A DNA stretch of 64,000 bases from Epiperipatus broadwayi (taxonomy: Eukaryota > Animalia > Onychophora), in the NCBI GenBank assembly GCA_028023455.1, contig JAQFVV010000004.1, positions 12,462,001 to 12,526,000 of the forward strand. Reading direction: 5' to 3'. A model generated the notes under the pieces. The model saw nothing but the letters and a program-made list of their open reading frames with translations. It was not told the DNA's origin and did no database searches. Below, piece after piece: positions 3,401 to 58,140 of this stretch. The position numbers were made by a program, and so were the translations under genes. Each line of letters starts with the position of its first letter. The stretch's first letter is position 1.

Positions 3401-3410
3401 TAACAAATTC

Positions 3411-3640
3411 ACATCACATGACCACCTCCTCTTATGCTTGTGTATAACTGTTGTTAAAACAGGCAAAACTCACTATATATATTGTCACACACAGCAAGCT
3501 AGAATAATCAATGGATGCCAGAAGGCTTGTGCATAAAATCCCTATCTAGTGCCTACTCATCCAATATCCCCAGACTAGTTTCTGGCTTATGGCCTTCGTC
3601 AGTGAGGAGCCTTGGATCTGAGAGCACTGCACCTAGATCT
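3411..3640 (-). mobile_element. Family B hammerhead mini-element, single 5'-truncated copy
   Basis: High similarity to copies at 32228, 43410, 53807 and 55474. Contains the HHR at 3559-3617 and the tail motif ggtcatgtgatg (minus strand, about 3411-3422). Confidence 0.9.
3559..3617 (-). ncRNA. Type I hammerhead ribozyme, family B
   Basis: atccaa-ggc-tcctca CTGACGA a-ggc(cataa)gcc-a GAAA c(ta)g TC tgggga-ta-ttggat: bipartite stem I, stem II, palindromic stem III, GUC cleavage triplet. Confidence 0.85.
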
Positions 3641-6460: not shown

Positions 6461-6778
6461 ATGCTGAACCAGCACTAATAAGTTCAGATCAACATTTCCC
6501 ACACATACATATATAATCAGTGCTTGACTTTATAGTAAGATAGCAAATCTTCAAACTTTGGTGGACAGATTTCAATCCACTCCACTCTCCAACTCTTCAA
6601 CTGTACATACCACTGAAAATCTGATGATAGAATTCCCAAACCCCTTGTTAATGCCAATATTATTATCATGACCATGTTGACTTTAAGTCACTCAGATGCA
6701 TTATGTATGGGACCTTGTCCATTTAAATACACCAAAGAGCAATTAGGCAGGATACAGGCTGAATTTGTAATATTTAAA

Positions 6779-7135
6779 TACAAGTATAATTTATATACCA
6801 GGAGTTTAGATGTAATATAGAAGATTTGAACACAGAATTTCAAGTTCCCTTAAGCTATCAAGTCTACCCCATACAACCAATACACATGACCACATACATG
6901 TGAAAAAGATAAGATTATTTATCTTTTTCACATGTGTAGTCATGTGTATTGGTTGTATAAGATAAAATTGATAGCTGAAGGGAGCATGAAAATCTGTGTT
7001 CAATTTTTTTAACATGTGTAGTCATGTGTATCAGTTGTATGAGATAGAGTCAATAGCTGAAAGGAACTTGACAATCTGTGTTTAAACTCCCTATATTACA
7101 CTTAAGCCCAGGTATATAAATTATACATGTATTTA
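6779..7135. repeat. Family A fold-back plus partial tandem: antisense copy, central hairpin, two sense copies
   Basis: Antisense 6779-6915; hairpin catgtgaaaaagataa/ttatctttttcacatg; sense copies at about 6922-7013 and 7014-7135; outer ends are inverted. Confidence 0.85.
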
Positions 7136-16690: not shown

Positions 16691-16762
16691 TGCGTTGACC
16701 GGGAAGCGAACCCGGTCTAGCTGCCTGAAAGGCAGCTATGCTAACTGCTAGGCCACCAATGC
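16691..16762 (-). pseudogene. Retroposed tRNA-Gly(TCC)-derived pseudogene whose anticodon reads TTC
   Basis: GCATTGGTGGCCTAGCAGTTAGCATAGCTGCCTTTCAGGCAGCTAGACCGGGTTCGCTTCCCGGTCAACGCA has a eukaryotic Gly-TCC backbone and an acceptor-stem mismatch. It is followed by TTTGACATATG and an A-tract and is absent from the neighbouring family G unit. Confidence 0.85.
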
Positions 16763-16937: not shown

Positions 16938-17140
16938 TGAACCCACCCTGGCACCTCTCTGAGGAGTGCCAAAGCATGAAACCATGGTCAGGGATTGGGG
17001 GGGGAGGGATTCCTGACAGAGATATTTTAAGTGCTGGCTCTGGCTAAGCATTTATCACAAAGCTTGTTGAGGAATTGGCAATCCTCACTGTTTATAACTT
17101 ACAAGCTTAAGAGATGTGGTCATGTGATCTATGACTCTTA
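16938..17140 (+). mobile_element. Family E hammerhead mini-element inserted into a reverse family G unit
   Basis: GC-richer island with an HHR at 16955-16993, ending acaagcttaagagatgtggtcatgtgatctatgac. The family G sequence breaks at gagcctaaagata and resumes at aaatggtatcg. Confidence 0.75.
16955..16993 (+). ncRNA. Type I hammerhead ribozyme, family E
   Basis: ctct CTGAGGA gtgc(caaa)gcat GAAA c(catg)g TC aggg: canonical core with palindromic ccatgg stem III. Confidence 0.85.
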
Positions 17141-17648: not shown

Positions 17649-17915
17649 TTAAAGATGTTCTAATTATAAATTTATTTAAACGCACATTGATTAAGTAAAT
17701 AATATTCATTAAGGCTGTAGCCTCAAGCACATGCGTATAAAATGCGATAGTAGGGACCTCTACAGGTCTTAAAACCGCAAGCTTACTCATTGGAAGGGTT
17801 TTCTTCCAATGAGTAAGCTTGTGGTTTTAAGACCTATAGAGGTCCCTACTATCGCATTTTATACGCATGTGCTTGAGGCTACAGCCTTAATGAATATTAT
17901 TATTAAAGATGTTCT
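17649..17915. mobile_element. Near-perfect 204-bp palindrome inserted with a 13-bp TSD and a 36-bp one-sided tail
   Basis: 99-bp arms at 17698-17796 and 17803-17901 with 2 mismatches and a 6-nt loop. ttaaagatgttct at 17649-17661 and 17903-17915. Unpaired segment at 17662-17697. Confidence 0.9.
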
Positions 17916-21486: not shown

Positions 21487-24400
21487 GATGATGTGCTGTA
21501 CTGTGGCTTCTCCTTTTTCAGAGTCAGGAATCTCTCAGCATCTATGCCCAGAGAAAACTGTTAGCCATCTTACCTTTCCTTTTCATTCCCAACATTGTTT
21601 TCCCCGTATTCTCTTGTATCATGATACATCCCATTTCCACAACATAATCTTTGTCAACTACATGATCTTTATATCTAAATTCCCATTGTCTTTTCCCAAA
21701 CCCAGCATAAAAACCAATAACCCACTTTCTGTATAATCACTTTGTTCATATTTAATCTTCCATAACTTCATTATATGTATTCTTTCTGCTTGCAGGTATT
21801 TGCATTTAACTAACAGAAGCCTGATATTTTTTACGCCATCCTTACACAACTTACAGATTAAATCACCCATATTTTTCCATTTATGTGTATATTCTCCTGT
21901 TGCTAAAGATCCTGAATGAACCTTAAACAGTAAACTATTATCCTTACTATTATCATAAATTTAATTGCACCAAATACTCTGTTTACTTCTATATATATTT
22001 AAACTCATTTTACTCTCCATACTAATTCTTCATCTCTCCAACTCCTTATTTTTTTGTTAATGTATCTATTTTTCAATCTCATTCCTTGCCTCTATAATAC
22101 TCAAAAATTCTCATAACACAATTATACCATCTTTTGTATAAGTGTACTAACATAAATTCTTTATTCAAATCTTCTGCATATTATAGTACCTTTCTCACTC
22201 ACCTTGTTGCCTGTCCTTTACTTATAACCCAATTAAATACTATTTTGGTTATTCTCTTACTACTCATAAACTGCAGTCTACTGAACATTTTCATTTTGCT
22301 TTTTGCATCTCTCATTTAAAAACTTGATCATCCCATTTCTCCTTGAATTGCCTACTTTACCATCTACCTATCTGTATCTAATGCATGTCTTGCTACTTCT
22401 CTTTATACTTTTTCTAAGTAATCTAACACCTTTTTACAAATGCATAATTCATCGTCACTATATGTTAACCATGCTACTGCCAATCCCTTCCATACAATTC
22501 TAGTTACATCATTAATTGTATGAAAACATTGTTAATTTCTTTATCAGTCCCTTTTTTTCTTTGGTTCATTTATCAATTTTTTCTCACTATCATGATGATT
22601 CACAAATAGTTATACCTATTCACCACATTTAACTTTATATCCTCCAGTAAAAATTATTTCTCTTCTCTTTCCTCAGCATTTAGAATCATTACTTTGATTT
22701 TTCTTCATTAAATTTAATCCACATCTCTTTACCTACCCTTGTGCATGTCTTCAGCATAACTTCCATATCTTCCCTATTTTCTATGCACAAGAAGACATCA
22801 CCCACAAATAAAATATCTGGTAATGTATATACTTCCTTGCCACCTATTAATAGTATCTCCGCCCCTCTACCTAGTCTTGCTATTGTTCTCTCCATTTCTC
22901 TCAAATACAACAAAAATAGATGAAATAGGACATTGTTGTCTAAGTCCCACTCAATTTTAACTTTAACTGATTCTATATTTCCTAACTGATATGTATATTA
23001 ATTGTTTTCATACAATCTCTTAATAAGATCCATTAAAGCTCCATCCATTCCCTAATTTACTAAACTCACCCATAATATAGTTTTATTTATTCTATCATAT
23101 GCTTTCTATATATTTATAAAAACATACGTAGCTGTCTATCTGTGTTTCTACTCATATCTCTAAGTTGTGTAACTACAAATAAAGTATCTGCTATATGCCT
23201 ATCCAATCAAAAACCTTCTTGCATTTTTCTCACTATATTATTTTCTTCCATCCATTTTGCAATCCTTCCAGCACCATATATGTGAAAACTTTATGTAACA
23301 TTGACATTACCTCTATTGGTCTATAAATGTTTAACTTTTTATGATACTTACCCTTTCCTCTAAATAGCAGCCTTGCTCTTATATTACGCCAACTATCTGG
23401 AATTTCTTTCTTCTGTGCCATCTTATTAAAAGATGATAATAGGTTTAGATGATAATAGGTTTAATTTTGCCCTATTTACTACATTCATAACAATCTCTGC
23501 TGCCCATCTATCTAACCCTCTTGCCTTTCCACTTATCAATTTCATGTCTGCCTCATTCAATTCATTTTCTGTAAACCTAATATTTCCATTACAAGAGGCT
23601 TTCATGTTTGTTATTACTCTGTCCCTCACATATAACATTTTTCTATATCCATTACATAGTTATTTAAGATTGGCTCTAATTCCTCTCCAGAGCTATACTC
23701 TGTTCCCTCATTATCTGGTAATACTATTTCTCTCTCACCTATATTTTCTTTTAATGTATTTCCAAAATTTTTTGCTCCCATCTCTTCCACTTTTGCTAAT
23801 ATCCACCAACAATTTATTATTTAATTTCATTCTCTCTATATAATTATCTATTTTAGCCAACTTTTTAAAAATACCTGTCCCATTTAACATTAACAACTTT
23901 TTCACTTTCTTTGTTCTTAATAATACACTTATATTCTCTGCATGTTTTTTCTATCTTTTACGCATTTACTAACTCTTGCTTATCTATTACTTTTATTCTT
24001 CTGAATATTCTCATCTAAAACCCTATTTGTCACTTTTTCTACTTCACCACACTAATCCTTATATTCATCCCCAACAAACTTTTTCATGATTTCTTCTACT
24101 TTTATTTCATATTCTTCTAACTTACTCTTATCATTTATTCGCCATCTACATATTTCACTACCCTTTATGTTATTCACATCATCAATTTTATTCGATATGT
24201 GCATTCACATCCCCTACAATCATTATTTTCTTCCCCCTTTTTGTAACTCTGTATATTCTTGTGTAGGCATCCATATATGCTATTGTTCCATTCCATTATA
24301 GTTTGACTATCTCCAGTGGTTATATACATTATAGCCACCATCCATTCTTGTCTTCCTAACTTATCTCAAACCACAAATGTTCTTGACATTTAACAGTATT

Positions 24401-26130
24401 TAAATATTTTTGACATAACTCTACTACCATCCTTTTTTTTCTTTTCTATTTATACCCTGCCATATCAAGTCTTCCAGTATATGTTATTTTTCTCTTAGAT
24501 GTATTTCCATTACTTCTAGTACCTCAAGCATTTCATTTTTAACTGCTTTGTTTAATTCCAGCCACTTCTCTGGTATCTTACTACCATGCATATTCAAATA
24601 TCCAATTTTAACAATTTATTCTTTACTAACTACTCATTTATAAATTCTTTTGACTCTTTCTTCTCCATTACATTTGTAAGTAACTTGCTTATCATTAAAT
24701 TTACAGAACCATCCCCTCTCCACATCTACAGTTATATCCAAATCAGCTACCCTTTGTTTATTTCTTCCATCCCATTCATTCTTCTTCTTTTTGATAATAC
24801 TGACAATTCTTTTTTGATAATACTGCAATTTAAAACTTCTTTTCCATTTATAAGTTTCCTGAACTATAATACTCTTTATAAATCAACCTCCCTAACACTT
24901 CACTTTCTTGTTTTGCTAAATGCAATCCATCTTTACTATATAACTGCTTCTTACTAATAAAAAAAATTCCATACATCCATAAACATAACATCATTTCTCT
25001 CTCACAATTTTTTCAATCTCTCATTTACAGAACATGCCATATCTAACATATACTTGTCGAATCTTAGTAATAATCCAACTATTCCTACTCTTCATTTAAT
25101 TGTATTCAAATTACTAATCAATTCTATGTACTCATCAATTACTCTCTTTGATGGCTCTGACAAATTATTTATCCCTACCATACTATACCCATCTCTACTC
25201 CCTTGTTTCTTTACCATATCTGTAACACCCCTAATTCTAGCTCCAGGCAAACATTCTTATATACCTGTTTCTATTTTTCCTTGCAAATACATCTCCAATT
25301 CCTCTAACCAGCAAATCTTCTATCAATTATGTCTCATAGTTTACTTTCCCTATTTCATCTGTAACATTGTCTTCTACCTTCTGGACTTCCTTATCTACTT
25401 CTTCCTTATCATTTCTATTCAATAATTCCTTTATCTGCTCACACTTCATCTCTAATAATTTTAATTTTGCTTCTACATTCCTTTACCTCTTCCTCTATCT
25501 CACATATTCTTTGGTTAACCATATTAACCATCTCCATTGCACTATATATTTTGTCATCGATATCTCTTGTCACTCCACTAAAAGCATACTCTATTCTATG
25601 TTTCTTCAACACATTTTGCTCTATTTCTCCTGACTTTCTCTTTAAACTATCTATACTTAGAAATCATTTTTTCATCTCTTTCATCAAATTTAAAAATGTC
25701 AACATAACCATAAACCTGTTACATTCTTCCTAATCTTATTTAAGCATTTCAAATAATAAAACTTATTACATACAGTACACTCTATCACAGTATGCCTAAT
25801 TTCTTTCTGTCCATTATATATACATTGTGGAGTATGAATGCAATCCATATTTCTTATTTTTCAAATCCCCTACTCTATATTTAATTTTATGCTTTCTCTA
25901 CTACTCTTCAAATCCCCTTCATACAAAAGGAGAAAAACTTTTCTTTTTTTTCAATGGCAATCAAAAGCAAATGTCTTCTAATCTTATGCCTCAAAAATGT
26001 TATCTTCTTTCTCAAATAAATTACTCTCTTTCTTAAATTAACAAATTCTTTAATAGCAAACCTACTAACAAATCAACCAATTTTACATACAACTTAATTT
26101 TAAAGTCTCCTTGTAGTAACACACACAAAA
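21487..26130 (-). mobile_element. Near full-length decayed CR1/L2-group LINE: ORF1 (PHD + SGNH esterase), ORF2 (APE endonuclease, RT, C-terminal Cys motif)
   Basis: IECTVCNKFYYLKCLN (PHD-like); CLPGARIRGVTD...VGINNL...VNERLKKL...FMDVWNFF (esterase); YRPIEVMSMLHKVF, QEGF.LDR, KAYDRI, GLRQQC, LFVGDV, KFNEEKSK (RT); CKLCKDG...LLVKC. Many stops and frameshifts. Confidence 0.9.
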
Positions 26131-27811
26131 ATTATTTTTTTCATTTTATATTTAAAATGGCATAATGAAACACTTTCCAAATGTTATCAGTATTATTTCC
26201 AATCTTTACAAATCCAATTAAATCTCTCTCTCTCTTCATACCAATTTTTTTTTAGCTCCACATAGTAAGCAAAAAATTTAGAAACATTTTTTTTCAGATA
26301 ATATTTAAAAAAATATATAAACTTTAACTTATCTTGTGGTATAGGAGGATTCCTATAAGAGGCATCCAGTGGGAGAAACATGTACTGTATACAATGTACT
26401 TTCCCTCTAGAGAACAATTCTGATTATTTTTGGGATACCCCCTTGTACATGGATATGATTTAATAAACTCTTATTAAATTAACCATCTTATTAAAATAAA
26501 AAGTAGATCAGCTTTTCCAGGACAATTGTGCCATGGCTGACAATGTGATTCCTCAGCTGACTAGATAAAATATTGGTCATATTTCAATGTAATAAATTTA
26601 AATGTTTCTTTATGAACACCAAAGATAAAACATAAGATTTTAAAGCATAAAATAATCATGATGTGTTTTTTTTTTTTTTAAGATTAACCATTTAAACAAT
26701 TGAGTGATTTAGGAGAATAGTAAAGAACTACAAATTGTGATTTTAAAAATAATAATTAACTATATAAAAAACAAAAAGTGCATAATAATACAAATTAACA
26801 CCTTAAACATTAATTAATATTACATTAATAATCCACTACATAATAAACAAAAAATGCATAATAGTATGAGTTAATTACTTCTTAACAATGTTTAAATTAA
26901 TATAGCCAAAAAATTAGCAGTAAATAATTGGTTAGTTTACGTTAAATCTTAACAGGTAATTAAGTTTTATTACTATTAGTTTAGCAATATGCATATTCAA
27001 TTAATACTGGATTAAAAAGGAAGAATCACAAGGATTCTAAAATCAGATCGTTAGCAGGACTAAATATCACTCAGTTAAATAAAAGAATCCTAAACCTCAT
27101 CAGAATTTTAAAAATATACAAGTGTCACAATTGAGAAGTTATAAGTGTCTACAATATAAATAATCATATGAAAATAAAGAGTGAATTAATATCTCTAATT
27201 AGATCCAATAAGCTCCTATCTCAGTTACTTACTGAAAAATTAATATGTGCATATATAACAGCATACAAATTATCAAAATTGATATTTGTTATGTAGTAAA
27301 TTATATACAATATCTTCACTTTACGATACTGAAAACTGCAGACAGGCTCTTACCAAGATGTATTAATTATACTAATATATTTAATTTTATTTAATTATTA
27401 TAAGTTAACCTACCAGTGTCAAATTTCCTGCACTCACATATGATGTCAATTACTTTTAGCTAAATAAATACATTAATGATTATTACTCATTTATTAAGAT
27501 TATCCTCAACCAAGTGAAAATAAAACTTCGGAATAAAATGCATCTTGGAGGTCATTTGTCTTTTTCAGATAGTTTTGTTCAGGTTTAAGAAAGTGTGGTT
27601 GAATGGAAGTTTTAAAATATAACTAAAAAAATATTTATAAAACACTAAACTTATATATATATATATTACACCAGTTTTGAGAATATATATTATAATTTTT
27701 TACATTAATAGAAAGAAATGCATTAATTTCTGTTAATTCCATAGTATTGGCATAAATAAAAAAAATAAAAGTGCAATAATAGAATGGAAAAAATAATTAG
27801 TTATAAATTTT

Positions 27812-28040
27812 TAAGTATAGAGGATTTGAACTCAGATTTTCAAGCACCCTTCAACTATCCACACTATCTCATACAACTGATACACATGACCACACACATG
27901 TAGAAAAAATAAATAATCATCAATAATCATATGTGTGTGTGGTCATGTGTATCAGTTGTAGGAGATAGTGTGGATAGTTGAAGGGTGCTGGAAAATCTGA
28001 GTTCAAATCCCCTATACTTACAATTAAGCTCCAGGTTTAT
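27812..28040. repeat. Family A fold-back
   Basis: Arms of about 88 bp at 27812-27899 and 27933-28020 with few mismatches. The tail caattaagctccaggtttat is present only on the sense side. Confidence 0.9.
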
Positions 28041-29073
28041 GAAGAATGCCTAGTTTTCAAATATTTATAAACTTTCAATAAATATTATTATGTAATAAAA
28101 AATGAGCATTTAGAAAACAGTATTTTATAGATACAAATTTCTTTAAATAATTCCTTATTTTTTCTAGTGTTATAATGAAGTTGTTTTCAAAATTCTTTGA
28201 TTTTATTCTATTTCGCATTACTAAAACTTTTTTCCCCACTTTTGTTGACGAAGAGAAGTTGCTAAAATTACATTATCAAAATAAAAGGATAATAAAAATA
28301 TTTTTTAAAAAAAAAAATTCAATTCATATTTCATTTTAGAAAAACAACCAATAATGAAAATGATCTACATAAATAAGAATTGATTTTTGTTCCATTAGGG
28401 AAGGCAATAAATATAGAACTATATATACTTATTATTTTAATAATAAAAAAATCGTTAATAGAAGAGATTTTTTGTCATTAAAAAAATGAAAACAATTAAT
28501 TGGTTATAAAAAGACGAATTCTGAAAAGCTTGTATACCTAAAAATTGTTTGTAATATTAATCAATAAAATGTTTGAAATTTTTATCTAGTTAATAAATCA
28601 AACATATACAAAATTAAAAATACTAATCAAAATTTAAAATCTAAAAACAAATTTAAAAAATAACATTTTTATTAATGCCATTAACAAATTTAAAATTATT
28701 AATGAAATTAATGTATATACACTAGGCATATTTGCCCCCACAAGAGTTTATTATTTTATCCATTCTTTTAAAGCATACAATACATTAATCAAAAAAGTTT
28801 TGCAGCCATATTGGAAAATAGATGATTGTCAAAGAAAATTAACTCTTATTTTACAATCTGTACAGAGAGTATGATAGAATCATCTGGCTGCTCATTAGAA
28901 AAATATCAACTGATACATGATATGTCCCAAAAATTTATTTAATTTCAAATATACTGTATATTAAAACAACTATTTTTTGACTTTCAAAATAGGCACATAA
29001 TCATTAATAGCAGATAAAGTAGATTTTACTTTAAACAAATTTTAAATAATGCAATAAGATTAAACAACTAAAT

Positions 29074-29223
29074 ATCACATGATCACCAGTCTTTATGCTA
29101 ACACAAGCTGTTTACACAGAGGCTTAACTCTCCATACAGTAGCACTACTCTTCTTGCATACATTAATAACTCTAGATTGCACTGAAAGGTACTACTATAT
29201 GGAGGGTTAAGTCTCTGTGTAAA
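29074..29223 (-). mobile_element. Divergent family B-like fold-back
   Basis: Arms at 29111-29152 and 29186-29223 resemble aactctccatacagtag of family B. The tail atcacatgatcacc...gctg occurs on one side only (29074-29110). Confidence 0.7.
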
Positions 29224-30399: not shown

Positions 30400-33080
30400 A
30401 TAATTTTTAATAAGATGATGATGACCATTATACAGCCACTCTTTGCACTAACTGGCTAGATCACAGAGAATATAAGCTATTCTTGATAAAATGAACTTGG
30501 AAAAAATATGCAGATCAGGTAATATTACATGTAAAGATGATAACACACTATTTAAACCAATAACGTAGCCTTAGTCCAATAAAACAACTACTCCAATTTT
30601 TTTTTCTCTCTTTCTTTTGTTAAAATAAAACCATTTCTTCAATATCTTTTTTCCCTTCTTTACTTTTTGCTTTAGGTCACACCTACAGTAAAAAACAATA
30701 GGTATTTATAAAGTGTTTCAGATTTATTTTGCTTAATTTTAACACTATTAATCTTATAATTAAATATTATGATACAACTTATTATTAGTATACTTTTTCT
30801 ACGATCCAGCATATGGTCACAGAATAAATCAATGACCTTTAATATACTCCAAATACAATTTTACACATGGCCGACCACAAATATAACAGATTTATTTACA
30901 TAAGCGATAGCACAGTCACACATATATATCTATTACGAAATAATTTTTCATCAATAAACCTTTCTTACAACAATAACTCTATGAAATAGCTGTATTAAGT
31001 CTAAATCCTGATTTAACAATAATATATTAACTATTAGATGGGGTTTTTTAATCCATCCCCTATTTATTATTAATCCTTATTAATTAATTGAGGTAGTTCT
31101 TTAGATCTGACCATGAATTTATTTAACAAAACCATAATATGTTCTAACATATATAAAATTTAACACACAACAATCCAAAGAAGAGCTAATTTATATATAA
31201 ATAGACTCCATCTAATTTCAAAATGAACCTTTAACTTAAAATCAACGAATTATATTACATACAATTTTTTTTCTTTTTAACACTTGTAGCTTTAACTATT
31301 TTGCAAGCATACACATTTGTTTTAAACCAAATGTTATACCTTAAATTATTTAACTGCCAATTTCACATTAAAGAAAAAAATTTTTTTAAAAAATGTTAAT
31401 AAGTCATAACCTATATATAAAGTAAATATAATAAGAAAGAATTTCTTTTTTTATCAAATCTTTATTTTAACCCCAGTTGCATTAAAATGCAACTATTTTT
31501 TTTCTAAACCTTTGCTTACTGTTTTAAACAGCCCATAATATAAAATATAGCTTTTTAGTACTAAATATAAACTAAAATAAAATTTAAAAGGGTCAATACA
31601 TTAGAATAACAATCTAAACAGTTCTTCTAATTTACAAAACAAAGTTCTGCAACTGTAGTTCTATTTCTCTTGGGATGGCAAATATTAATTGATTCCATTT
31701 TAAGTTGCCATAATATCCTTTCACAATTCCCTCTCTTTAAAATTTGGAAGGACTGATTCCTCATTTTAATTAGAAATTCATTCAAAAAAATAGTAAGTTC
31801 ATATTCCAGTTGTCCAGGGTAGATTTTGGCAGTGAGCAGAATTTACTTTTTTCTAATCAGCCATCATAATGATAGTTTGATCCAGAATGGCCACTTTCAA
31901 GAAAAACTGACTTTATATAAGTTTTACATCTTGTTTTGAACAACTTAATTTTGTTTTTAACACCTTTGATCTAGTTTTTCACAGGATTGAATAATCTTGC
32001 TTTTAACACTTTTAATATTATCTTATTTTTGACATTATTAAAGCCAGATTTTATTTTAAGTACAAAACTTCAAATATGCTTTCATTATTTAATTGATTGA
32101 ATTTGCAAAACACTGTAATTATTAAATTGCTTGATTTTGTTATTTTTTTGTTTTTGAATTTCATATGTCCAAAATTAGCTTAACCTTTTTAAATTTAATT
32201 ATTTAAAATCTATTTTTTAGTTGAGTTAAACCATTAAACATCGCATGATCATCATTTCTTATGCTTGCTCATAACTGTTATTAAAATAGGCAAAACTATC
32301 CATACAGTTGTGCCACTCAGTGCAAGCCAGAAGGCTTGTGCATAAAATTCCTATCCAGTGCCTATTCATCCAATATCTTCAGACTAATTTCTGGCTGTGG
32401 CCTTCATCAGTGAGGAGCCTTGGATCTGAGAGCACTACACCTAGATCTTAGGATCTAATGCAACCCTCCAGCAGCCACTTTTTATCTCTACTTAACTACA
32501 AAACTATGAGAATAAAATTGAAAACACAATAATATTTTCAATCTAAGCTCAATAGCTTATATAGTCATATGGGCCTGAACTCAGTTCAGTATCCATAGAC
32601 TTTGGTATATATATATATATATGACTATATAAGCTATTGAGCTTAGATTGAAAATATTATTGTATTTTCAATTTTATTCTCATAGTTTTGTAGCTAAGTA
32701 GAGACAAAAGGCAGCTGTTGGACAGTTGCATTAGATCCTAAGATCCAGGTGCAGTGCTACAAGATCCAAGATTCCTCACTGACAAAGACTGTAATCCAGA
32801 AACTAGTCTGGGAATATTGGATGAGTAGGCATTAGATAAAGATTTTATGCACAAGCCTTCTGGCATCCATTGATTACTTTGGCTTGCATTGAGTGGCACT
32901 ACTGTATGGAGAGTTTTGCCTGTTTTAATCTTAGTTGAGTTGTTTTGCAATACTTACTTTGATAAGATAAAGTTTTAATATAATTTACCAGTTTCTCTTA
33001 AATTTAAAATTTTAAACAAAACCTACTATATTATTTAATATTATTTTATAATATGACATTTAATAATTTTAACATTATTA
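30400..33080 (-). repeat. Copy 1 of a ~2-kb duplicated, decayed coding-like unit, interrupted by a family B fold-back
   Basis: Colinear similarity (roughly 70-80% by eye) to 34770-36750. Only weak integrase/transposase-like peptides (LPKSTLDNW; YIL..MDC; TATEVFKK). Confidence 0.75.
32217..32941 (-). mobile_element. Large family B fold-back with an 11-bp TSD
   Basis: TSD ttagttgagtt at 32217-32227 and 32931-32941. Long arm with tail at 32228-32604, (TA)n joint, short arm at about 32620-32930. HHR copies at 32368-32425 (-) and 32764-32822 (+, core mutated). The empty site ttaattgagtc is at 36481. Confidence 0.92.
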
Positions 33081-42400: not shown

Positions 42401-43408
42401 CATGCTTTTATTTCATGGTTGAAGAAACAATTATTTTTTATCTTTTTAATCAACAGTAAAGAAATTTTTGTATTATAAAATATTATATATATGTGTGTGT
42501 GTGTGTGTTTAAGTTCTTATTAGTGGTACAATAAATAAAAGCGTTTATTATAAAATATTTTTTACATATATTATTTTTAATTTTTTAGTATTTAGATATT
42601 TTTTGCAATTATTCCAATTCAAAATGGAAATTAAAACTAACTGCAAGATGTTAAATATTTGAAAAGAGAATCATCCACATTAAAGTTCATTTGCAATATT
42701 GTTATGCTTTTGGAAAAAAATATTTTTTTTCAAAAATCAACTTTTTCAATTAAGCTAAATAAAAGTTCATATATTTTTTTAAAAAGTGAACTTTTACAAT
42801 CAAAACAAATCAAGATTTGTTTTCACTACAATTTTAATGGATTGTTAACACTTTCCAGTTTATGCTTTTTAAAATATATATATATGCCAATGTCTCACAT
42901 GTTACTGAGGTGAGAGCAATATATTTGAAATTCAATCTGTCAGTTCCTTTACAGTAAAGGAATTAGGAGACCAACCTGAAATATTTAATTGTATTAGCAT
43001 AAATTTATTACATATATATATATAATTTGAAGGAAATCCATTTGATACAAGTGCATTAATTTTTTATTTCAATATTTTTCCTAAATAAGTAAGTAAACAA
43101 CTAATTTAAATAAAAGTATTTTTAAAAAAACCAATCACCCTTACAAAAAAAATATTTTCATCAATTGCTTTGGTGCAATGTTAATATTCCAAGACAATGC
43201 AGTGACTTTATTCTTATATTCTTAGATTAAGATATTTATAAAGCATGGACAATTGGCAATATTCCAAGGAAATAAATAAAATAGATTATCCCTGATACAT
43301 ACATCTGATACAGTGATTGACTGAATTTTTATATTATGCAGTGATTGAATGAATAATTTAATGGAAACTTTTTGGTAATTGTGCCTATTCAATATTATAT
43401 ATAAAGCA

Positions 43409-43603
43409 AGGTAAAACTCTCCATACAGTAGTGCCACCCTGTGCCAACCAGAGTAATCAATGGATGCCAGAAGGCTTGTGCATAAAATCCCTATCTAGTG
43501 CCTACTCATCTATTGATTACTCTGGGTGGCACTATTGTATGGAGAGTTTTGCCTTGTTTAATAACAATTATATGCTAGTATAAGAGATGGTGATCATGTG
43601 ATT
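43409..43603 (+). mobile_element. Family B fold-back, truncated before the HHR
   Basis: Antisense arm 43409-43510 joined at catc/catcc microhomology to the sense arm 43511-43603, which ends ggtgatcatgtgat. Confidence 0.88.
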
Positions 43604-45300: not shown

Positions 45301-45461
45301 TCAGTTCATAAGAGCCAAAGAAAAGAGTGTAGGGCATTCACTCTACAAAAACAAACTAGACAAAGCAAAGGAAAATTAATGTTATTTAAATACAATAGTA
45401 AAACCATATACTTTCATAATACTAACAAATAGGCATGTATTTTGTTATATAAGTATATATA

Positions 45462-45690
45462 TATTATATAATGAGCATGCTAATAGCTCTTAACATGCTT
45501 TTCTGAATATTCCTATCCTCAGATCAGTTTCTAGCTCTGGCTGTCATCAGTGAGGCACTAGAAACCAGTCTGAGGATAGAAATATTCAGAAAAGCTTGTT
45601 AAGAGCTATTAACATGCTCATTATATAATATTTGTAGTACAAGCTTATTAAATTAAATCACATGATATATGACTTGATTTTCTTTTAATA
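45462..45690 (+). mobile_element. Family C hammerhead fold-back
   Basis: Antisense arm 45462-45557 includes an HHR on the minus strand at 45517-45555 (cctca CTGATGA c-agc(caga)gct-a GAAA ctga TC tgagg). It joins the sense arm at a ctag microhomology; the tail is only on the sense side. Confidence 0.88.
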
Positions 45691-46399
45691 CATGTATGCA
45701 TATGTATAATATTTGCTATTTATTCACAAAAGTAATGATATATATATATATATTGAAGGATTCTTAAAATATTGTATAAGATCATTTTAGTTATTTAAAA
45801 AATAAGTAGTTGTAATACTGCCACTGCTTCTGTTTGTCAAATGTTCCCAGCATATTTTAGATTAAACTTTGAATAATTACAGAGATAAATCATGGTCATT
45901 CATAGTAAAAGTGGCAGCCATCTTTATATTTCATATATTCCCAATAGTACCCAAATAAAATCTTAAATTACAATCACCTTCACACCTGATCTTATGTAAA
46001 ATGCTTGGAATGAATTTTAGAGATATCTTTGCTGATAAGACTAAAATATAATTATATTTTTCAATAATTTTCTCTTCACGATTCATAATGCCCTTAGAAA
46101 AAACAATTATTATTAAAGCCAACTTTTATTTTATTAAAAACCTTCCAACTTTTTAAAGAACTCATTGAATTCATGATGTACATATAAATATTGGAATAAC
46201 AGAACAAGATGAGTTAAAAGACTAAAATAAATTCTATTTTTTTGTTTTTTCAATTCAACAAAACGTATGTGTATATATATATGCAATTCAAACTGAATAA
46301 ACTATTTCACAATTTTTTCTCTGTGAGTCACAAGGGTAAAAATATCTACAAATCTAATTTATATACATACGTATAGCTATGTGCCATATACAGAAAAAA

Positions 46400-48640
46400 A
46401 AATTGATAATAACAGTATTGTTCAACTGAGTGCTCTTTATGAATTGTGTACCATACTCATGATGAAGTAGCTAAACTGACCAGTTAATATTCCAGTGCAT
46501 GCTCAGTGGGATATTAAAATTTTTTTGATTGACAATGTTATTAGATTTGGCAATGTACAAGGCCTCTTTTATTTTCCCATCTTATCATTAGGCTTGTTGC
46601 AGATGGCATTAATTATTTTAGGATAATATTCATGTTCAACACTTTTCTTATAATTGAAATAACTGGAATTAATTTGATAAACAGAGCAAAACTCTCCATG
46701 TGATGCTTAATGGAATTAATTTGATTTGTCCACATTAGACTTTTTATACTGTAAATGTGTCGATATATTTGCCTTCATCTCACTGTATTAAGAGGTATTA
46801 CAACCAGGATCTTGATAAGTGATCGAATTATTTATCATCTTGTTATAACCCATCTTTTGAATTGTTTATCAGTCTGTTTAGGCATAGGGTAGATTTAAAT
46901 CTGTTGTACCGCACACTTATTGAGTCATTAACATATTTCTCAATATTCCTCTTCCTATCTGCCTCAAATTTATCCGAATATAAATTATGATAAAAAAACA
47001 TTTAAATCCTATTAATTTTTATTTTAGAGAAATATTTGATGAAGAGTGTATAATGTCTTAACTTAAATAGTTTAATAACCATTTTATATGTAAATTCATT
47101 GTGATCTCTATATATTTTCATCTAAATATTTAAAATTTTGATTAATCTCAAATTCCATAGTCCATATCAAACCTAAACAATTATTTAAATTCTTAAAAAT
47201 ATTCTCAATCATCCATTTTGGACTATATACAAACAAACCATCCACATATCTTCTGTATAAAATATCACAATTTATATCAATTAATGGTAATATAATATGA
47301 TCTTCAATCTCTAAAACATAAAAACTGCATATAATGCTGCTCACTGCCAATCTTTTGGCTATAGCTCTTTTCCATTTGGTAAAAGCTCTTTACATACCTT
47401 GAAGAAATATTTCCAATGATCCATTCTAATACTTCCAATAATAAATTTGGCTATGTATAAATCTATGTCACATTGCAACAAGAGCTTCTTAATTAGACAG
47501 TCCACTGATCCAGATAATTTGCACACATCCAGTGAAGCCATACAATAATTATTGACAGACTTAACAGATTTCAATGATTGCTCAAATTCAAATGTAGATT
47601 TAATCGTAAATCGACCAAAGTCTATCAATTCATGTAACAATTTTGCAAACAATTGACGCATGTTATAATAATAGCAACTTCCAAAATTGACCATCAGCCT
47701 CAGAGAAACATTCTCTTTATGCATTTTAAGATTTGTAAACAATTGTGGAATAATTGCTGCAGACAGATAAATCTTCAGATATTCCTTTCTATTAAATATT
47801 TTTTCAATATCCGGATGTAAAACACTGATTGTAAACTTATCCTTCATTAATTTTCAATTATAATTGTCAATTGTTTTGAATTTCAATTTATTGATTTATT
47901 GATTCATTTTCACATTAAATATGTCTTTGTCAATTAAAAAAAACCTATTGTTTTTGTTTTCTTTCATACATATAATGTTTTTCTCTTGCAACATTGATTT
48001 GAAATTGTTAAATGTTTGATTCCAAAGATTCCACACACTTAAATATTATTTACCCTTTAACACTGGAGCTATTTGCTTGATTATATCTTCTTTTTTCTCA
48101 GAAAATTCATATGCTGTCTCAATATCTGCAATAAACTTCATGTTTGGATTTCTCCAGTCTCCTCTAAAAAATTTTGGTTCATATTATAACAAGCCTTTGA
48201 ATTCTGTTAACATTTTTGCATTTGAAAAATTAATGTAATTATATTGTGTTTCTCTATAGGCCAACATACTTTGCTTCTCTGTTAAAAACTTAAATTTGTT
48301 ACCAAACTTGCATTGCAAACATTTTTTTAATCCTTACACTGGTTTATAATATTTTTTGATACTGCATAAAATGTCATCAATCTTCTTTTCTTAACTATAC
48401 TTAAATATAATTTCTTCTGACATCTTCTGACAACAAACTTTAATAATATCATTTGCAACAGAATCATGGTTCTCATCCTCATATAAATAGATGGATTAAT
48501 GAAGACACCGCAGTAGTTTGGAAAGATGTTATAGTAAATGCACGTTTTTAGATTTTCAAATGTTCTCCTAATTTAACAATTTCTTTATGTAACTTTAATT
48601 CTTTCACATACTTCCAGCCATAATCATAATTCTTATTTAT
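46400..48640 (-). mobile_element. Penelope-like element remnant PLE4, nearly complete ORF decayed
   Basis: FLIDKDIFNVKM, IIPQLFTNLKMHKENVSLRLMVNF, MASLDV, LYRRYVDG, WTMEFE..QNFKYLD, GCNTS.YSE (GIY-YIG), EALYIAKSNNIVNQ. Confidence 0.9.
46664..46725 (+). mobile_element. Minimal 32-bp family B two-ended insertion with a 15-bp TSD inside PLE4
   Basis: tggaattaatttgat at 46664-46678 and 46711-46725 flanks aaacagagcaaaactctc + catgtgatgcttaa. Paralog PLE5 has a single atggaattgatttga at about 48977. Confidence 0.8.
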
Positions 48641-48719: not shown

Positions 48720-50190
48720 TGGAGAAGAAAAATTTGATAATAATATTTAGTTGAACAAGCTTTCAACACTGTGTACCAGACACATGGCAAACTAACTAAA
48801 CCAATCAGTTAGTATTCCAGTACATTATCAGTAAAACACTAGTAGTTCTTTGAATGATAATGTTATTAGATTTGGCAATAAAACAGGTCTCTTTGAATCT
48901 TCCTAAGCTCATTGCAGAAAGCATTAATTATTTGAGAATAAAATTTATATTTAGCATTTTTCTCATGATTAAATAAAATGGAATTGATTTGAGAATGTAC
49001 TTTAGACTTTTTATATTGGTACATGTGTTTTCATACCAACCTTTGTGTCACTATAACAACTGGCATTACAATTATATCCTTGGAAAATGATTGATTTATA
49101 CAATTTCATACTTATCATCTTGTTCAACCTATCTTTTGAATTGTTAATCAGTCAGTTTAGATATAAGAGTGATACAAATCTGACATTAACATTTTTATGA
49201 ATTACTTCTTTTAAACTCACACCTAAATTTGGAACACAAACCAAGGAAACCCATTCTTTATCCACCTTAATTGCCTACATATTTCTACTGTACTCCATAC
49301 ATACTAAGTAATTAATTTATTTCTTAATATTCTTCTCCCCATCTGCCTCTAAGTTACACAAATATAAATTATTGTGGTGTGGAAAACATTTAAAACCTAT
49401 TAATTTATGCTTTAGAGAGATATATGACAAAGAGTGTATAAAGCTTCTTACATTTAACAGCTGGATAACTATTTTGTATACGAACTCATTATGATTTCTA
49501 TATATTTACATCTACACCAATTACTTAACTGTTAAACATATCCCCAATCACCTTTCATGGATATATATGAAAATGTCTGTATAAAATATTACAATTTATA
49601 TCTATTAATGGCTGTATAATATGATCTTCAATCTGTTAAACGTATAAACTCCAGATGACTCCACACACTGAAAACCCCACTGGCCAACTCTTTTCCATTT
49701 GGTAATAGCCCTTTACATATATTGAAGTAATATCCCCATTGATCCATTGTTACACTTCAATACAAATTTGGCTATATATACTTTTACACCATATTATAAC
49801 AAGAGCTTCTTAATTATACTTATGGATTGCAGCTATATAATTTGCACACCTATAGTGAAGCCATACAATAATTATTGGCAGTCTTAGCAGACTTCAATGC
49901 CTGTATGAATTTGAATGTAGATTTAATTGTAAATCAATCAAAACCTATCAACTTACGTAACTATTTTGCAAATACCTGATACACTTTATAATAATAGCAG
50001 CCTCCAAAATTGGTCATCAGTCTCAGAGAATTTATGCATTTTAACATTGATGAGTAGATGCAAAATAATTGCTGAAGATGGATAAATATTCAGATATTCT
50101 TTTCTAGTAAATATTTTTCCAATATATGAGCATAAAACACTGATAGTAAACTTTTTCTTCATTAATTTTAAATTATAACTGTTGATTCTT
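48720..50190 (-). mobile_element. Penelope-like element remnant PLE5, same lineage as PLE4, directly upstream of it and 5'-truncated
   Basis: Colinear with 46430-47850: KEYLNIYPSSAII, MASL.V, GVSGVIWS, GIY-YIG remnant. Confidence 0.88.
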
Positions 50191-52879: not shown

Positions 52880-53095
52880 GGGGTAAGTGAGTGAGATAAT
52901 CTGGAATTTGTGAATAACAAACCATTGAAAAAACTTGATATCATCAAAATGGATAACTTGAACATTGACATCTTAGAAATTAGTGAAATATATAGACTGG
53001 ACTGGAAGATTTTAAATCATTATGCATGCAAAAGACAACAAAAGTAAAAGTGATTTTCATTATCAAGAAAGGTATTGTAAAATACATATAGGCAT
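52880..53095 (+). pseudogene. RTE-type LINE endonuclease N-terminal remnant
   Basis: IWNL...KKLDIIKMDNLNIDILEISE...WTG.F pattern. Confidence 0.55.
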
Positions 53096-53100
53096 AATAA

Positions 53101-53490
53101 TATTATATAATGAGCTTGCAAATAACTCTTAACAAACTTTTCAGAATATCCCCAACCTCAGACTGGTATCTGCTACTGGCTTCCTCTGTGGGGTACTAGG
53201 ATATTCAAACATTATATTTAAAATACCAGACTGGATTGAAAGACATATAAATGTCTGAAAATTTCAGATTTTCTACTTAATAGTTATCCATTAGATAAAG
53301 TGCTGAGCTTGGCCTGGTATTTTAAATCTAATGCTTGAATATACTAGCACCTCACTGAGGAAGCCAGTAGCAGAAATCAGTCTGAGGTTAGGGATATTCT
53401 CAAAAGCTTGTTAAGAGCTATTTGTAAGTTCATTATAAAACATTTGTAATATAAGCTTATTAAATTAGGTCATGTGACACATGACTTGAT
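53101..53490 (+). mobile_element. Family C hammerhead fold-back, second copy
   Basis: Arms at 53101-53232 and 53312-53440. Sense HHR at 53350-53387 (cctca CTGAGGA a-gc(cagta)gc-a GAAA tcag TC tgagg). Tail aagcttattaaattaggtcatgtgacacatgac. Confidence 0.88.
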
Positions 53491-53796
53491 TCTTTGTAAT
53501 TGTAGATAATAATATATATGATGGATTAATATCAGTTCAATTTTATAGATATTCATTCAACTTTACTATAATACAACTCTATGCCCCCCCCTCCCAATAA
53601 CTAAAAAAAAAAAAATAAGTAAAAAAAATTATGATCAAGTACAAGCAAAGTTTGACAAAATTTGCTTGCAAGATAAATATTTAGTGATTATTAACTGGAA
53701 CATCACAGTTAACAATATATATATAATATTTTTTTGTTAAATATGATTTTATTTAATTTAAGAGCTAAAGCACACAAAAAATTTTTTTTTGGTACC

Positions 53797-54115
53797 ACAA
53801 TCTTGAAAAAATGGCAAAACTCTCTATACGTATTGCCACTCAGTGCAAGCCAGAGTAATCAATGGATGCCCGAAGGCTTGTGCATAAAATCTCCATCTAG
53901 TGCCTATTCATCCAATATCCCCAGACTAGTTTCTGGCTTATGGCCTTCATGAGTGAGGAGCCTTGGATCTGAGAGTACAAGCCTTCTAGCATCCATTGAT
54001 TACTCTGTCTTGCACTGAGTGGCAATACATATAGAGAGTTTTGTCTGTTTTAATAACAGTTAAGAGCAAGCATAAGAAATAGTGATCACGTAATGTTTAT
54101 TGACTATAATTTTGA
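53797..54115 (+). mobile_element. Family B fold-back with a degenerate 10-bp TSD
   Basis: Antisense arm 53807-53975 (HHR core mutated to CTCATGA), sense arm 53976-54105. acaatcttga / ataattttga (8/10) flank it. Confidence 0.88.
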
Positions 54116-54899: not shown

Positions 54900-55463
54900 A
54901 CATCTGAAATATTGCATTGTCATCCATATTGAACAAGTGAGTAAAATTTGAAAAAAAAAAAACAACTGTTCAGTAGAATTAGATTAAAAATTGATTACAA
55001 GAATTTGTTTTTATAAGGCAATAGTGAATTTTGCATAAACAAACCAATAGAAAATAATTTCTACTTTCTTTTTATTTCTATTTTAATTAATTGTAAATGT
55101 CTTTAAAACTTCTTCCTCAAATTAAATGAAAACTTTTGCTTAAAAATATATAGCATCATCTTTCATATCTCAAAACTTATGGTACTGATTTGATTGCAGT
55201 TTGAAATGTGGCCTGCCAATATTATTACACTGGAAAATCATAAAATATTTGTGTTATGATATAATGTTATCATTGAAACTGAATGCTTGTACAAAATTTG
55301 AAAAAAATCCATTCAATAGAAGTATCTTAAAAATTAGTTACAAGCAATGGCCCAAACAACAGAAGTCTTAAATAAAAGTATATAAAAATGAACAGAAAAA
55401 AATTATATTAGTAAATAAAGGCTTAAAATCAAAAATAAAGTAAAAGAGTGACTAAGATCTATG

Positions 55464-56208
55464 AATTTAACAAGTAAAACAGGCAAAACTCACTGTATGT
55501 ATTGCCACACACAGCAAGCTAGAGTAATCAATGGTTTCCAGAAGACTTGTGCATAAAATCCCCATCTAATACCTACTCATCCAATATCCCCAGACTAGTT
55601 TCTGGCTTGTGGCCTTCATCAGTGAGGAGCCTTCTATTGATTACTCTAGCTTGCTGTGTGTGGCAATACGTATAGTGAGTTTTGCCTGTTTTGACAACAG
55701 TTATACACAAGCATATGAAGTGGTGGTCATGTGATGTTTATTGGCTTAAAACCCATCCTGCCTAATAGAATAATGGTAGCTATGGTTATTAAAGAAGCAA
55801 AGACACCAAAATGTATGGGTGCTGAACTGAGTTCAGACCCATATGAGTCATATAATCTAATGGGCTTGGATTGAAAACATTAAGGTGTTTTCAGTTTAAG
55901 ACTCATAGTTTTGTAGTTAAGTGGAGATAAAAGGAGGCTGCTGGAGGGTTGCATTAGATCCTAAGATCTAGGTGCAGTGCTCTCAGATCCAAGGTTCCTC
56001 ACTGATGAAGGCCACAAGCCAGAAACTAGTCTGGGGATATTGGATGAGTAGGCACTAGATGTAAATTTTATGCACAAGCCTTCTGGCATCCATTGATTAC
56101 TCTAGCTTGCTATGTGTGGCAAAATGTATAGTGAGTTTTGCATGACAACTGTTATACATAAGCATATGAAGTGGTTGTCATGGGATGTTTATTGGTTTAA
56201 TTTAACAA
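55464..56208 (+). mobile_element. Composite family B insertion: antisense arm plus ~1.25 tandem sense units, 10-bp TSD
   Basis: TSD aatttaacaa at 55464-55473 and 56199-56208. Antisense arm 55474-55633 has an intact HHR. Sense 3' ends fall at 55747 and 56198, a 451-bp period. Confidence 0.9.
55987..56045 (+). ncRNA. Type I hammerhead ribozyme, family B (best-preserved sense copy)
   Basis: atccaa-ggt-tcctca CTGATGA a-ggc(cacaa)gcc-a GAAA c(ta)g TC tgggga-ta-ttggat. Confidence 0.88.
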
Positions 56209-58140
56209 ATACTGATTATAAATATAGATATCACTGGATAAACCATATAGAACTCAAACTTAATATGTCAATGATATTCAGCAATGACCAAGAATAAATT
56301 GAAAAACAAATTATTAATTATCTAATACTCTAGATATCACACACAAAACATATCTATTGTTTTAAGTATAACATCAGAAATCAATCTGAATTTTTAAGAT
56401 GTAATGGATTAAAAAAAGATAGACAATGAAAGAATGAAATGAAATCTAATAAAAATTTAAATAAATTGAAAAAATCATGAAAAATTAAAATGGATGTCAG
56501 AAGGTATAATAGTAATTCCAAAAAAAAAGGCAATATTAAAAAATACATAAAGATCTTTAAAGAGAACAAAATAAAAAATTCAGACCTCCTATGAAAGATA
56601 AAAATACTTATTACAACAATATTTGCAAAAAAAAAAAAAAATAGTGAAAAAGAAAACAAGTCTGGAAAATCAAATTATCTTTCAAGTATTTGGAAATTTA
56701 AAAAAAGCTTTAGCCATGAATAAATTAATTGATAAAGTTAATGGATAGATAATATGCCAAAATATAAATCCAAATGAAGATAAAAAGCATATACAGAAAA
56801 AAAATACAAACACAGACAAGTTTGAGGCTATATATATAAAAACATACTCTACATAGACAAATATTCAATAATGGAAGATAAGAATCACACTGGCCTTCAG
56901 ATCATTTCCAAAAAGTAAAAGATTAGTATATAATCTGGGAGTTATTACTGACAATGGGATGTATTTGAAAAGATTAAATAAAGTGTGATTTTTTTCTAAA
57001 CACATTTAACAATTAATATTAGCTGATGAAAATAATCCAACCTATAATTAAAATACAATCATTATAAACTGTCAGACAATGAATAATAAAATGAATAAAT
57101 ACTTGATTAGATTATACCCGAGTTCTCACTGGATTATTTCACAGATAATATATAGCAATCTAGTTCATTAAATAAACTGTAAAACATAACAAACTTATTA
57201 AAGGGGGGAAAGGGATCACTTGTAGTAACAAATGTTTCATTAGGGAGACTTGATATAGCAACAAATAATTTTTTGTCATGGGATCACCAGTAGTCGATGT
57301 CAATTTGAAGGCATCGAATAATAATTGTTTATTTAACTTGGAAGATTTTCATGTACTATTTTGTTCAATTTACCCATATTTTTAAGTGAATGGGAATAAA
57401 AATATAATATATAACATGACTGTTCACTACATGCTTAAAGGGAAATGCTTTCAATAAAAATTTTATTTCATATTATATATTTCCAATATTATTTTCCAAT
57501 TTTAAGTTATATAATCATGTAAAAAACAACAGTGAGATATTGAATATGAATCCAGCTAATTATTAGCCAATCAATAAAATATTATCTATAATTTATCAAC
57601 GAAATTCTGGGATTCATAATTATTTATTTTTCAATAAAATCAATAAAACTACAATATTATGACAAAATTAAATGTAATTTAATATATGTAAACATCAGAT
57701 TCCACAAAATTAAAACAAATCCCACCATTAAATTATTATAATTTTGTATTATTTATTTAATAAATAAAATAAAACCAAGAACGAAATTTAATAATTAGAA
57801 AGAGTTTTTCCCTACTGCAATGTACAAAAAAAAACGAGTACAATATATGCAGCAAAATACACAAAATAAAAATAATTTAATATGAAACTTTGATCATATC
57901 TCTAAAACTAAAGACTAATATGTTAATTGTAGAAAATATTGTATTATCAACACATAGCTTACATATTTAGAATATTTTTATCTGCCATCATATTGATATT
58001 ATATCATAATCTATTGAAGAGCTTTATGGAAAAGAAATCGGTTACAAATTGCCTACATTTTTAAATTTAACTTTTAAGTTGAAAGTCTTTACAAAAGTTA
58101 TTTTAGTGCTCATGATTTAAGTTGAAATAAAATATATTTG

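Follow-up and report, generated by a model that had tools for sequence, protein, structure and literature searches.

A one-sided tail on inverted arms: a Penelope-type insertion footprint in a non-coding, hammerhead-motif repeat family of Epiperipatus broadwayi

How does a repeat that encodes no protein come to lie in a genome as two inverted arms, only one of which carries a further stretch of about 55 nucleotides (nt) at its outer end? The question is raised by an insertion at 32217–32941 of a 64,000-nt stretch of Epiperipatus broadwayi DNA (contig JAQFVV010000004.1; hereafter the window), which belongs to a repeat that we call family B. Its geometry is the established insertion signature of Penelope-like elements (PLEs) and not a new mechanism, and the two-site mechanism that it suggests is essentially the published one. 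What is new here is that a non-coding, retrozyme-like family bears this footprint, that its tail is longer, and that tails and insertions are paired almost strictly one to one. The family B unit is 451 base pairs (bp) long and has no open reading frame (ORF), and the window around it is AT-rich (GC content of about 23–36%). Insertions are named by their position as c3 (3402–3641), c29, c32 (32217–32941), c43, c46, c53, and c55.

Direct reading of c32 bore out both the coordinates and the description given in an initial annotation of this DNA, namely target site duplications (TSDs) around two inverted arms that are separated by a filler. The features of this locus are as follows.

32217–32227, no strand: left copy of the TSD, 11 bp, TTAGTTGAGTT, identical to 32931–32941 (direct reading)
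32228–32612, minus strand: tailed arm, whole (alignment)
32228–32282, minus strand: 55-nt tail, running from the putative inner start site (TTTT^AA) to the outer one (…GGTTT) (the other arm is without it)
32283–32612, minus strand: body of the tailed arm, family B, 5′-truncated (alignment)
32283–32298, minus strand: junction motif, 16 nt (motif search)
32382–32410, minus strand: minimal hammerhead core of the tailed arm, CTGATGA … GAAA … TC^ (pattern search)
About 32606–32624, no strand: central joint, (TA)n filler (direct reading)
32619–32929, with an extra C at 32930, plus strand: tail-less inverted arm, sense end …GCCTGTTTTAAT (reading and alignment)
32931–32941, no strand: right copy of the TSD, 11 bp (direct reading)

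Read in sense, the left arm runs 55 nt past the TTTT common to both arms and ends …TTTAATGGTTT. The two arms are 89% complementary over 169 nt in an inverted-repeat search, and the hammerhead copy in the tail-less arm is mutated.

Related arms were found by a BLAST search of the window with a c32 arm. The arms were all put in sense orientation and aligned; the comparison for each tail-less arm was its own tailed partner or, for c46, a tailed arm other than its partner. Arm positions are those of natural copies. The other family B copies are listed below.

55464–56208, plus strand: composite insertion c55 (reading, alignment, and inverted repeats)
46664–46725, plus strand: mini-insertion c46 of 32–33 bp (46679–46711) with its TSDs (reading and alignment)
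53806–54108, plus strand: insertion c53, tail-less arm 53807–53978 (minus), tailed arm 53979–54108 (plus) (BLAST, reading, and alignment)
43406–43603, plus strand: insertion c43, tail-less arm 43406–43510 (minus), tailed arm 43511–43603 (plus) (BLAST, reading, and alignment)
29052–29223, minus strand: divergent relative c29, tailed arm 29052–29160 (minus), tail-less arm 29161–29223 (plus) (BLAST, reading, and inverted repeats)
3402–3641, minus strand: single-arm, 5′-truncated copy c3 with tail and hammerhead core (reference for contig mapping)

Two of these copies are particularly informative. In c55, the TSD AATTTAACAA (55464–55473) and an extra G are followed by a tail-less arm (55475–55633, minus strand), a partial unit with tail (55634–55747), a full unit (55748–56198), and the second TSD copy (56199–56208). 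The partial unit is 114 nt long and ends …TTATTGGCTT; the AAAACCC… directly after it opens the full 451-bp unit, whose own 3′-end is …TTATTGGTTT. The insertion thus holds 1.25 units with the tandem junction GGCTT|AAAACC at 55747/55748, which is the partial tandem (pseudo-long terminal repeat, pLTR) organisation, and it is also where the ^AAAAC continuation past the 3′-end reported in the initial annotation is seen. In c46, an antisense piece of 21 nt that has its end at the inner site adjoins a sense piece of about 12 nt that has its end at the outer site, with a CAT overlap between them and TSD copies of 14–15 bp on both sides. The target site of c46 is empty in a diverged paralogue near 48990, which has one copy of the TSD sequence. 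The host stretch of c46 (46445–46990) has its paralogue at 48770–49372 with 69–79% identity, and the empty site falls within about 48930–49070.

The tail-less arms of the six two-armed insertions end at TTTTAAT| (c32), TTTT| (c55), TTTTT| (c53), GTTT| (c46), CCTTG| (c43), and GTGTAAA| (c29), where the end in c43 is ambiguous by a few nucleotides owing to a microhomology overlap with its TSD, which begins CTTTA. All six ends fall within an 8-nt window, from −4 to +3 nt of …GCCTGTTTT^AA. The chance of this is about 1e-8 over the 451-nt unit, and about 3e-6 over its last 150 nt. The initial annotation had the inverted arm starting always at the same site; the clustering stands, with a spread of a few nucleotides. 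It had likewise put the tail of the long arm at about 54 nt. The tail is found on one arm only in 6/6 family B insertions, as claimed, and its length is 55 nt, with the c43 tail about 10 nt short. Tailed arms otherwise end …TT(A/T)TTGG(C/T)TT, those of c3 and c53 being decayed, and the tail module of the family carries …GGTCATGTGAT….

A search of the window for the junction motif, allowing up to 4 mismatches, returned only copies that are either tailed themselves or tail-less and paired in inverted orientation with a tailed arm; it found neither solo tail-less arms nor doubly tailed family B pairs. The two single-arm copies, c3 and a family A copy at 16938–17140, are both tailed. Both sites read TT^AA: the inner is GCCTGTTTT^AA(C/T)AAC and the outer TTGGCTT^AAAACC. 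TSDs are perfect in c32 (11 bp), c55 (10 bp), and c46 (14–15 bp), each enclosing the whole composite, so that the 10–15 bp of the earlier description hold for these three. The clear TSDs on the outer side begin with AA in sense in c32, c55, and, after a TGG overlap, c46, which agrees with that description. The consensus of 394 contig overhangs reads …TTATTGGCTT followed by an A-rich flank, which together with the AA-starting TSDs makes a short primer/template overlap possible at the outer site. On the inner side there are 0–4 extra bases and no consistent overlap, and no structure conserved around the start sites emerged when seven tails were run through RNAalifold.

Are the two arms separate products, or is one a copy of the other? 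The central joints differ in all six family B insertions. Identical joints had been named beforehand as the sign that the copies descend from one master fold-back, and a single master is ruled out on this count. Descent from such a master by DNA-level copying, or a foldback DNA transposon or miniature inverted-repeat transposable element (MITE) with terminal inverted repeats, would account for inverted arms with flanking direct repeats, which look superficially alike. The arm lengths and joints, however, differ from copy to copy, the outer ends are asymmetric by 55 nt, the TSDs measure 10–15 bp, and the window also holds a single-arm 5′-truncated copy and a 1.25-unit tandem; moreover, the family has a hammerhead motif and occurs in contigs of RNA runs. 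Symmetric terminal inverted repeats with fixed ends and a fixed TSD length were not found. The c46 insertion and the differing inner ends rule out both a single master fold-back and a MITE, and we give this explanation next to no credence.

A subtler possibility is that a single priming event is followed by snap-back of the complementary DNA (cDNA) into a symmetric hairpin, one arm of which is then cut by the endonuclease at the tail boundary. Endonuclease-mediated resolution has been suggested as the cause of the PLE tail (PMC8557442), and self-priming and palindromes at joints have been discussed for PLEs (PMC3846280). Some of the joints here are near-palindromic (one has 6 nt between the arms), and the inner site TTTT^AA shares the AT-richness of known PLE endonuclease sites (PMC11167929). 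The tail-less arms of c43, c46, c53, and c55, however, contain element sequence that is absent from their tailed partners, and such arms cannot be snap-back copies of those partners. In c43, c53, and c55 the tail-less arm reaches 45–100 nt further 5′ than the tailed one, and in c32 the relation is reversed. The two pieces of c46 have no sequence in common; snap-back of 12 nt cannot yield 21 nt of different sequence, and the inverted piece must have been templated separately, from the inner site. The start sites of reverse transcription in vitro also coincide with the tail borders (PMC11167929). We therefore regard snap-back as unlikely.

As judged from these copies, the arms appear to be two separate cDNAs and not a fold-back copy, and the evidence favours a pair of cDNAs, each begun at its own fixed site, with about 55 nt between the two sites, that meet at a central joint. 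This is the mechanism that had been proposed at the outset, with two internal TTT^AA sites; c46, the independence of the arms, and the differing joints all support it. Diagnostic variants shared by both arms of one insertion (c53, c32, and c55) fit a single source RNA, in small numbers. Compared with the inverted arm of c55, the partial unit is 96% identical (2 differences/57 nt) and the full unit 90% (5/50), differences too few to decide which unit of a multimeric RNA was the source of that arm.

The 5′-ends of the tailed arms at 53979, 55634, and 43511, from three independent insertions, lie within about 20 nt of each other, at unit positions of about 323–341, and c32 has a 19-nt deletion at the place matching the tailed-arm 5′-ends of c53, c55, and c43. 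The clustered ends may mark a preferred stop or template-switch point.

Inverted pLTRs with a tail at one end are known from PLEs (PMC3846280; PMC8557442), and reverse transcription from two adjacent internal sites that are not homologous to the primer, with the genomic tail as the sequence between them, has been demonstrated with a purified Anolis PLE protein, which cleaved and extended both target strands (PMC11167929). The fixed second start site, put forward in the initial annotation as a point still to be settled, is hence already published in both respects. Endonuclease-bearing PLEs share with family B the head-to-head arms, the partial tandem organisation, high 5′ truncation, TSDs of about 8–15 bp, and a short stretch added to only one of the outer ends; their repeated part carries a hammerhead motif, to which the family B core is a candidate counterpart (PMC3846280; PMC8557442). 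An inverted, 5′-truncated copy beside a direct copy, with one TSD of variable length around both, is likewise found in c32, c55, and c46. Family B differs in being non-coding and only 451 bp long. Its tail is 55 nt, and those of other families in the window are 36–68 nt, whereas 30–40 bp are usually quoted; the tail is called optional in the papers but is nearly obligatory in the window, with one per two-armed insertion.

The likeness to the Anolis carolinensis PLE, PAc, extends to the two adjacent start sites spaced as the genomic tail, the cleavage and extension of both strands, AT-rich targets, and a start site that is mostly not homologous to the primer (PMC11167929). PAc, however, has no strand preference, whereas the natural two-ended insertions here have one arm per site, and its sites lie in an AC-rich stem-loop within an ORF, whereas those of family B are non-coding TT^AA sites, around which a conserved hairpin was looked for and not found.

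Twin priming of human LINE-1, said to have been described by Ostertag and Kazazian in 2001, is similar in that both nicked strands prime cDNA on the element RNA, the products are joined at microhomology, and an inverted 5′ part lies inside one TSD. The second site of LINE-1 is, however, variable and set by microhomology, and its inverted piece lies upstream of the direct one with little overlap. Family B has a fixed second site, 55 nt away from the first and confined to 8 nt, and its arms overlap in the same 3′ region, so that twin priming of the LINE-1 style was rejected. A review of LINE-1 twin priming is available (PMC10760644).

Beyond the window, the two sites receive partial support. DNA runs of the same organism contain the locus, and contigs matching c3 at 80% likeness number 131,417 and 170,681 in two DNA runs of one sample, with about 2,000 in each of two small runs. 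Family B, or its conserved core, is therefore extremely abundant. Contigs of public runs were mapped at that likeness on the single-arm copy (3330–3700). Among the best-supported positions, loose ends at 3454, just outside TTTTAA, have AT-rich overhangs without consensus (13 contigs in one of the small runs and 14 in the other), and those at 3411 have overhangs that continue to the canonical 3′-end of the family. From the tail (3434–3446) to just within the junction (3460–3472), the summed depth in DNA and unclassified runs goes up by a factor of about 1.9 to 4.3, although depth measures such a step poorly and divergence of subfamilies adds to it. The initial annotation had proposed that arm ends be tallied genome-wide, and its expectation is supported in part by the loose ends at the inner site and the outer end and by the depth step. 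Most of the loose ends among these positions (3494, 3501, 3505, and 3641) were rejected as insertion ends, being points of subfamily divergence or of truncation of the reference copy.

An RNA-labelled run had no depth step across the tail junction (3434–3472). Subject to the same weakness of depth as a measure, a flat profile would fit tail-carrying transcripts alongside many tail-less genomic arms. In RNA-labelled runs of nine organisms, 18–37% of the words sampled from the unit are present, with 29–37% in those of several species, and one of the RNA-labelled runs has matching contigs. The 16-nt junction motif was also found at 120 loci in public metagenome contigs; these have no further similarity to the unit and were set aside as chance matches.

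What kind of element is family B? The core of the unit is CTGATGA-(GGC…GCC)-GAAA-CTAG-TC^TGGGG, with a hammerhead helix I of 5–6 bp and a helix III of one pair closed by a palindromic loop. Helix II covaries between families (GGC/GCC, TGC/GCA, and AGC/GCT), as do pairs of helix I, and the pattern CTGANGA…GAAA…TC^ has 7 matches in the window where 0.65 are expected. The hammerhead identity is a motif-level claim, made from pattern and pairing. Minimal hammerhead variants of PLEs, of the type matched by the family B core, have been mentioned (PMC7229834). The unit RNA is strongly self-paired (folding z = −5.5). The only strong Rfam match at 55400–56300, to a microRNA model, is spurious and fits the inverted arms. 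Minimal PLE hammerheads reportedly act as dimers, a finding attributed to Lünse et al. in 2017.

A non-coding unit a few hundred bp in length with low GC content, a hammerhead motif, and a tandem copy is what characterises the non-LTR retrozymes of animals. These have been proposed to be non-autonomous derivatives of PLEs (PMC7229834; bioRxiv 10.64898/2026.07.22.740005), and their PLE origin has been argued from pLTR phylogeny (bioRxiv 10.64898/2026.07.22.740005). They resemble family B in being small, AT-rich, non-coding units of 150–450 bp that carry a type I or minimal hammerhead (a putative one in family B), are arranged in tandem, have RNA that pairs extensively with itself, occur in RNA runs and at very high copy number, and have been proposed to depend on PLEs, and they differ in forming long tandem arrays, whereas family B occurs here mostly as dispersed two-armed insertions (PMC7229834; bioRxiv 10.64898/2026.07.22.740005). 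In a term search of these two papers, the one-sided tail and inverted arms were unmentioned, and TSDs were mentioned in passing.

Taken together, family B is probably a non-coding, retrozyme-like element with a hammerhead motif, for whose mobilisation a PLE supplies the reverse transcriptase/GIY-YIG endonuclease in trans, through two-site priming. The enzyme would nick AT-rich DNA with a stagger of 10–15 bp. The 3′-end of one strand would prime cDNA at the outer site, …GG(C/T)TT^AAAAC, which would set the 3′-end of the unit on a tandem or circular template, and the 3′-end of the other strand would prime a second cDNA at the inner site, …GCCTGTTTT^AA, 55 nt upstream. Both cDNAs would stop at variable points, their 3′-ends would be joined by microhomology or filler, and each would be completed on the other. 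The expected product would consist of two arms placed head to head, with the 55-nt tail on the outer end of only one of them, and a TSD would enclose it all. We infer the use of both target strands as primers, the PLE enzyme as agent, and the reason why every insertion has one site of each kind; priming by both nicked strands is suggested because it matches the in vitro behaviour of the Anolis carolinensis PLE (PMC11167929).

Alternatively, only one strand might prime, at the outer site, after which the reverse transcriptase would switch template to an unattached antisense molecule with its 5′-end at the inner site, and the far end would be end-joined to the target. A fixed inner end and variable joints would be explained in this way, as could the 1–4 extra bases that separate the TSD from the inner end in c32 and c55, and an antisense template has been considered for PLEs (PMC3846280). 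The switch would, however, require an extra and unobserved molecule, either a separate cDNA or an antisense transcript, and the PLE protein extends both strands in vitro (PMC11167929). The TSDs of the composite are intact and of normal length, and the ends of c43 and c46 have the short overlaps between target and RNA that are expected for priming. A template switch is thus improbable in our estimation.

The two start sites may be used jointly, in one coordinated event, and not be alternatives picked at random. They could belong to a dimeric PLE ribonucleoprotein on one RNA with an active site at each, the 55-nt tail being the footprint of the dimer, in which case each protomer would nick and extend one target strand and exactly one tail would arise per two-ended integration. 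We offer this only tentatively and think it rather doubtful; if true, it would explain a one-sided tail in vivo despite the lack of strand preference in vitro.

Several points weigh against mobilisation of family B by two-site PLE priming. No hammerhead match was obtained from Rfam in the whole window at gathering scores, or in 55400–56300 at E values up to 10. The window has no PLE ORF that would encode the mobilising enzyme; three ORFs of at least 130 amino acids in the window have no Pfam match. The Anolis PLE had no start-site difference between strands in vitro, and this behaviour does not alone predict one tail (PMC11167929). The TSDs of c43 (9/10) and c53 (8/10) are imperfect, and that of c29 is unclear. 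Base-by-base reading covers the six two-armed family B insertions, a small number, and the tally of contig ends, which lists only the best-supported positions, is incomplete. Lastly, an old three-arm palindrome at 6775–7135, of the same family as the insertion at 27809–28023 described below, has outer ends that reach the same point on both sides and no clear TSD.

PLE integration is the least understood mechanism of eukaryotic retrotransposition, and it was not until 2024 that a first in vitro system became available. Family B provides a natural, base-level readout of both initiation sites in single integration events, with c46 consisting of nothing but the two initiation products. The tail signature, beyond the ribozyme, ties retrozyme-like hammerhead elements to the PLE machinery, and the pairing of one tail with each insertion constrains models of two-strand priming in a testable way. 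In our own view, a coordinated asymmetric complex would explain why there is near-constantly one arm per site.

Is the one-sided tail peculiar to family B? An inverted-repeat search, together with TSD finding and sequence reading, recovered the following insertions of other families.

53094–53515: hammerhead family C insertion; tail of about 60–66 nt with the box GGTCATGTGA; TSD ATAATAATAT, 10 bp
About 45456–45700: hammerhead family C insertion; tail of about 60–66 nt with the box GGTCATGTGA; TSD not resolved
17649–17915: young palindrome; tail of 36 nt; TSD of 13 bp
1203–1413: two-armed insertion of a tRNA-related family; tail of 55–68 nt; TSD TCATACTAGGTTAAA, 15 bp
27809–28023: family D insertion; tail of about 40 nt; TSD imperfect, about 8/10

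A one-sided tail is present in 11/12 insertions of all families (binomial 0.003 against random site choice). The rule is near-strict and not absolute, with 6775–7135 as the sole exception in the window. From the insertion at 1203–1413, the Penelope-type footprint appears to extend beyond hammerhead families.

The box GGTCATGTGA of the family C tails is also found in families A and B. A box of the form G(G/A)TCATGTGA(T/C) lies near tail 3′-ends at 3413, 17118, 29074, 37763, 43592, 45657, 53468, and 55725, and is common to hammerhead families A, B, and C, which have different bodies. Family C has it within the perfect hairpin GTCATGTG-A-CACATGAC, and at 37763 the box stands without a recognisable element body. 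The tail box is likely a common recognition module for the mobilising enzyme.

Elsewhere in the window, the region 22001–26000 contains no tandem repeats, and its 136-amino-acid ORF (23433–23843) has no Pfam match; over these 4 kb the GC skew is strongly negative (−0.52 and −0.60), and the AT skew is negative as well. Within the tail at 1203–1413 lies GAGTTCGAATCCC, which resembles the T arm of a tRNA. A tRNA-like sequence at 16691–16762 (minus strand; Rfam score of 30.4 bits against a threshold of 29) is located about 200 bp from the family A copy at 16938–17140.

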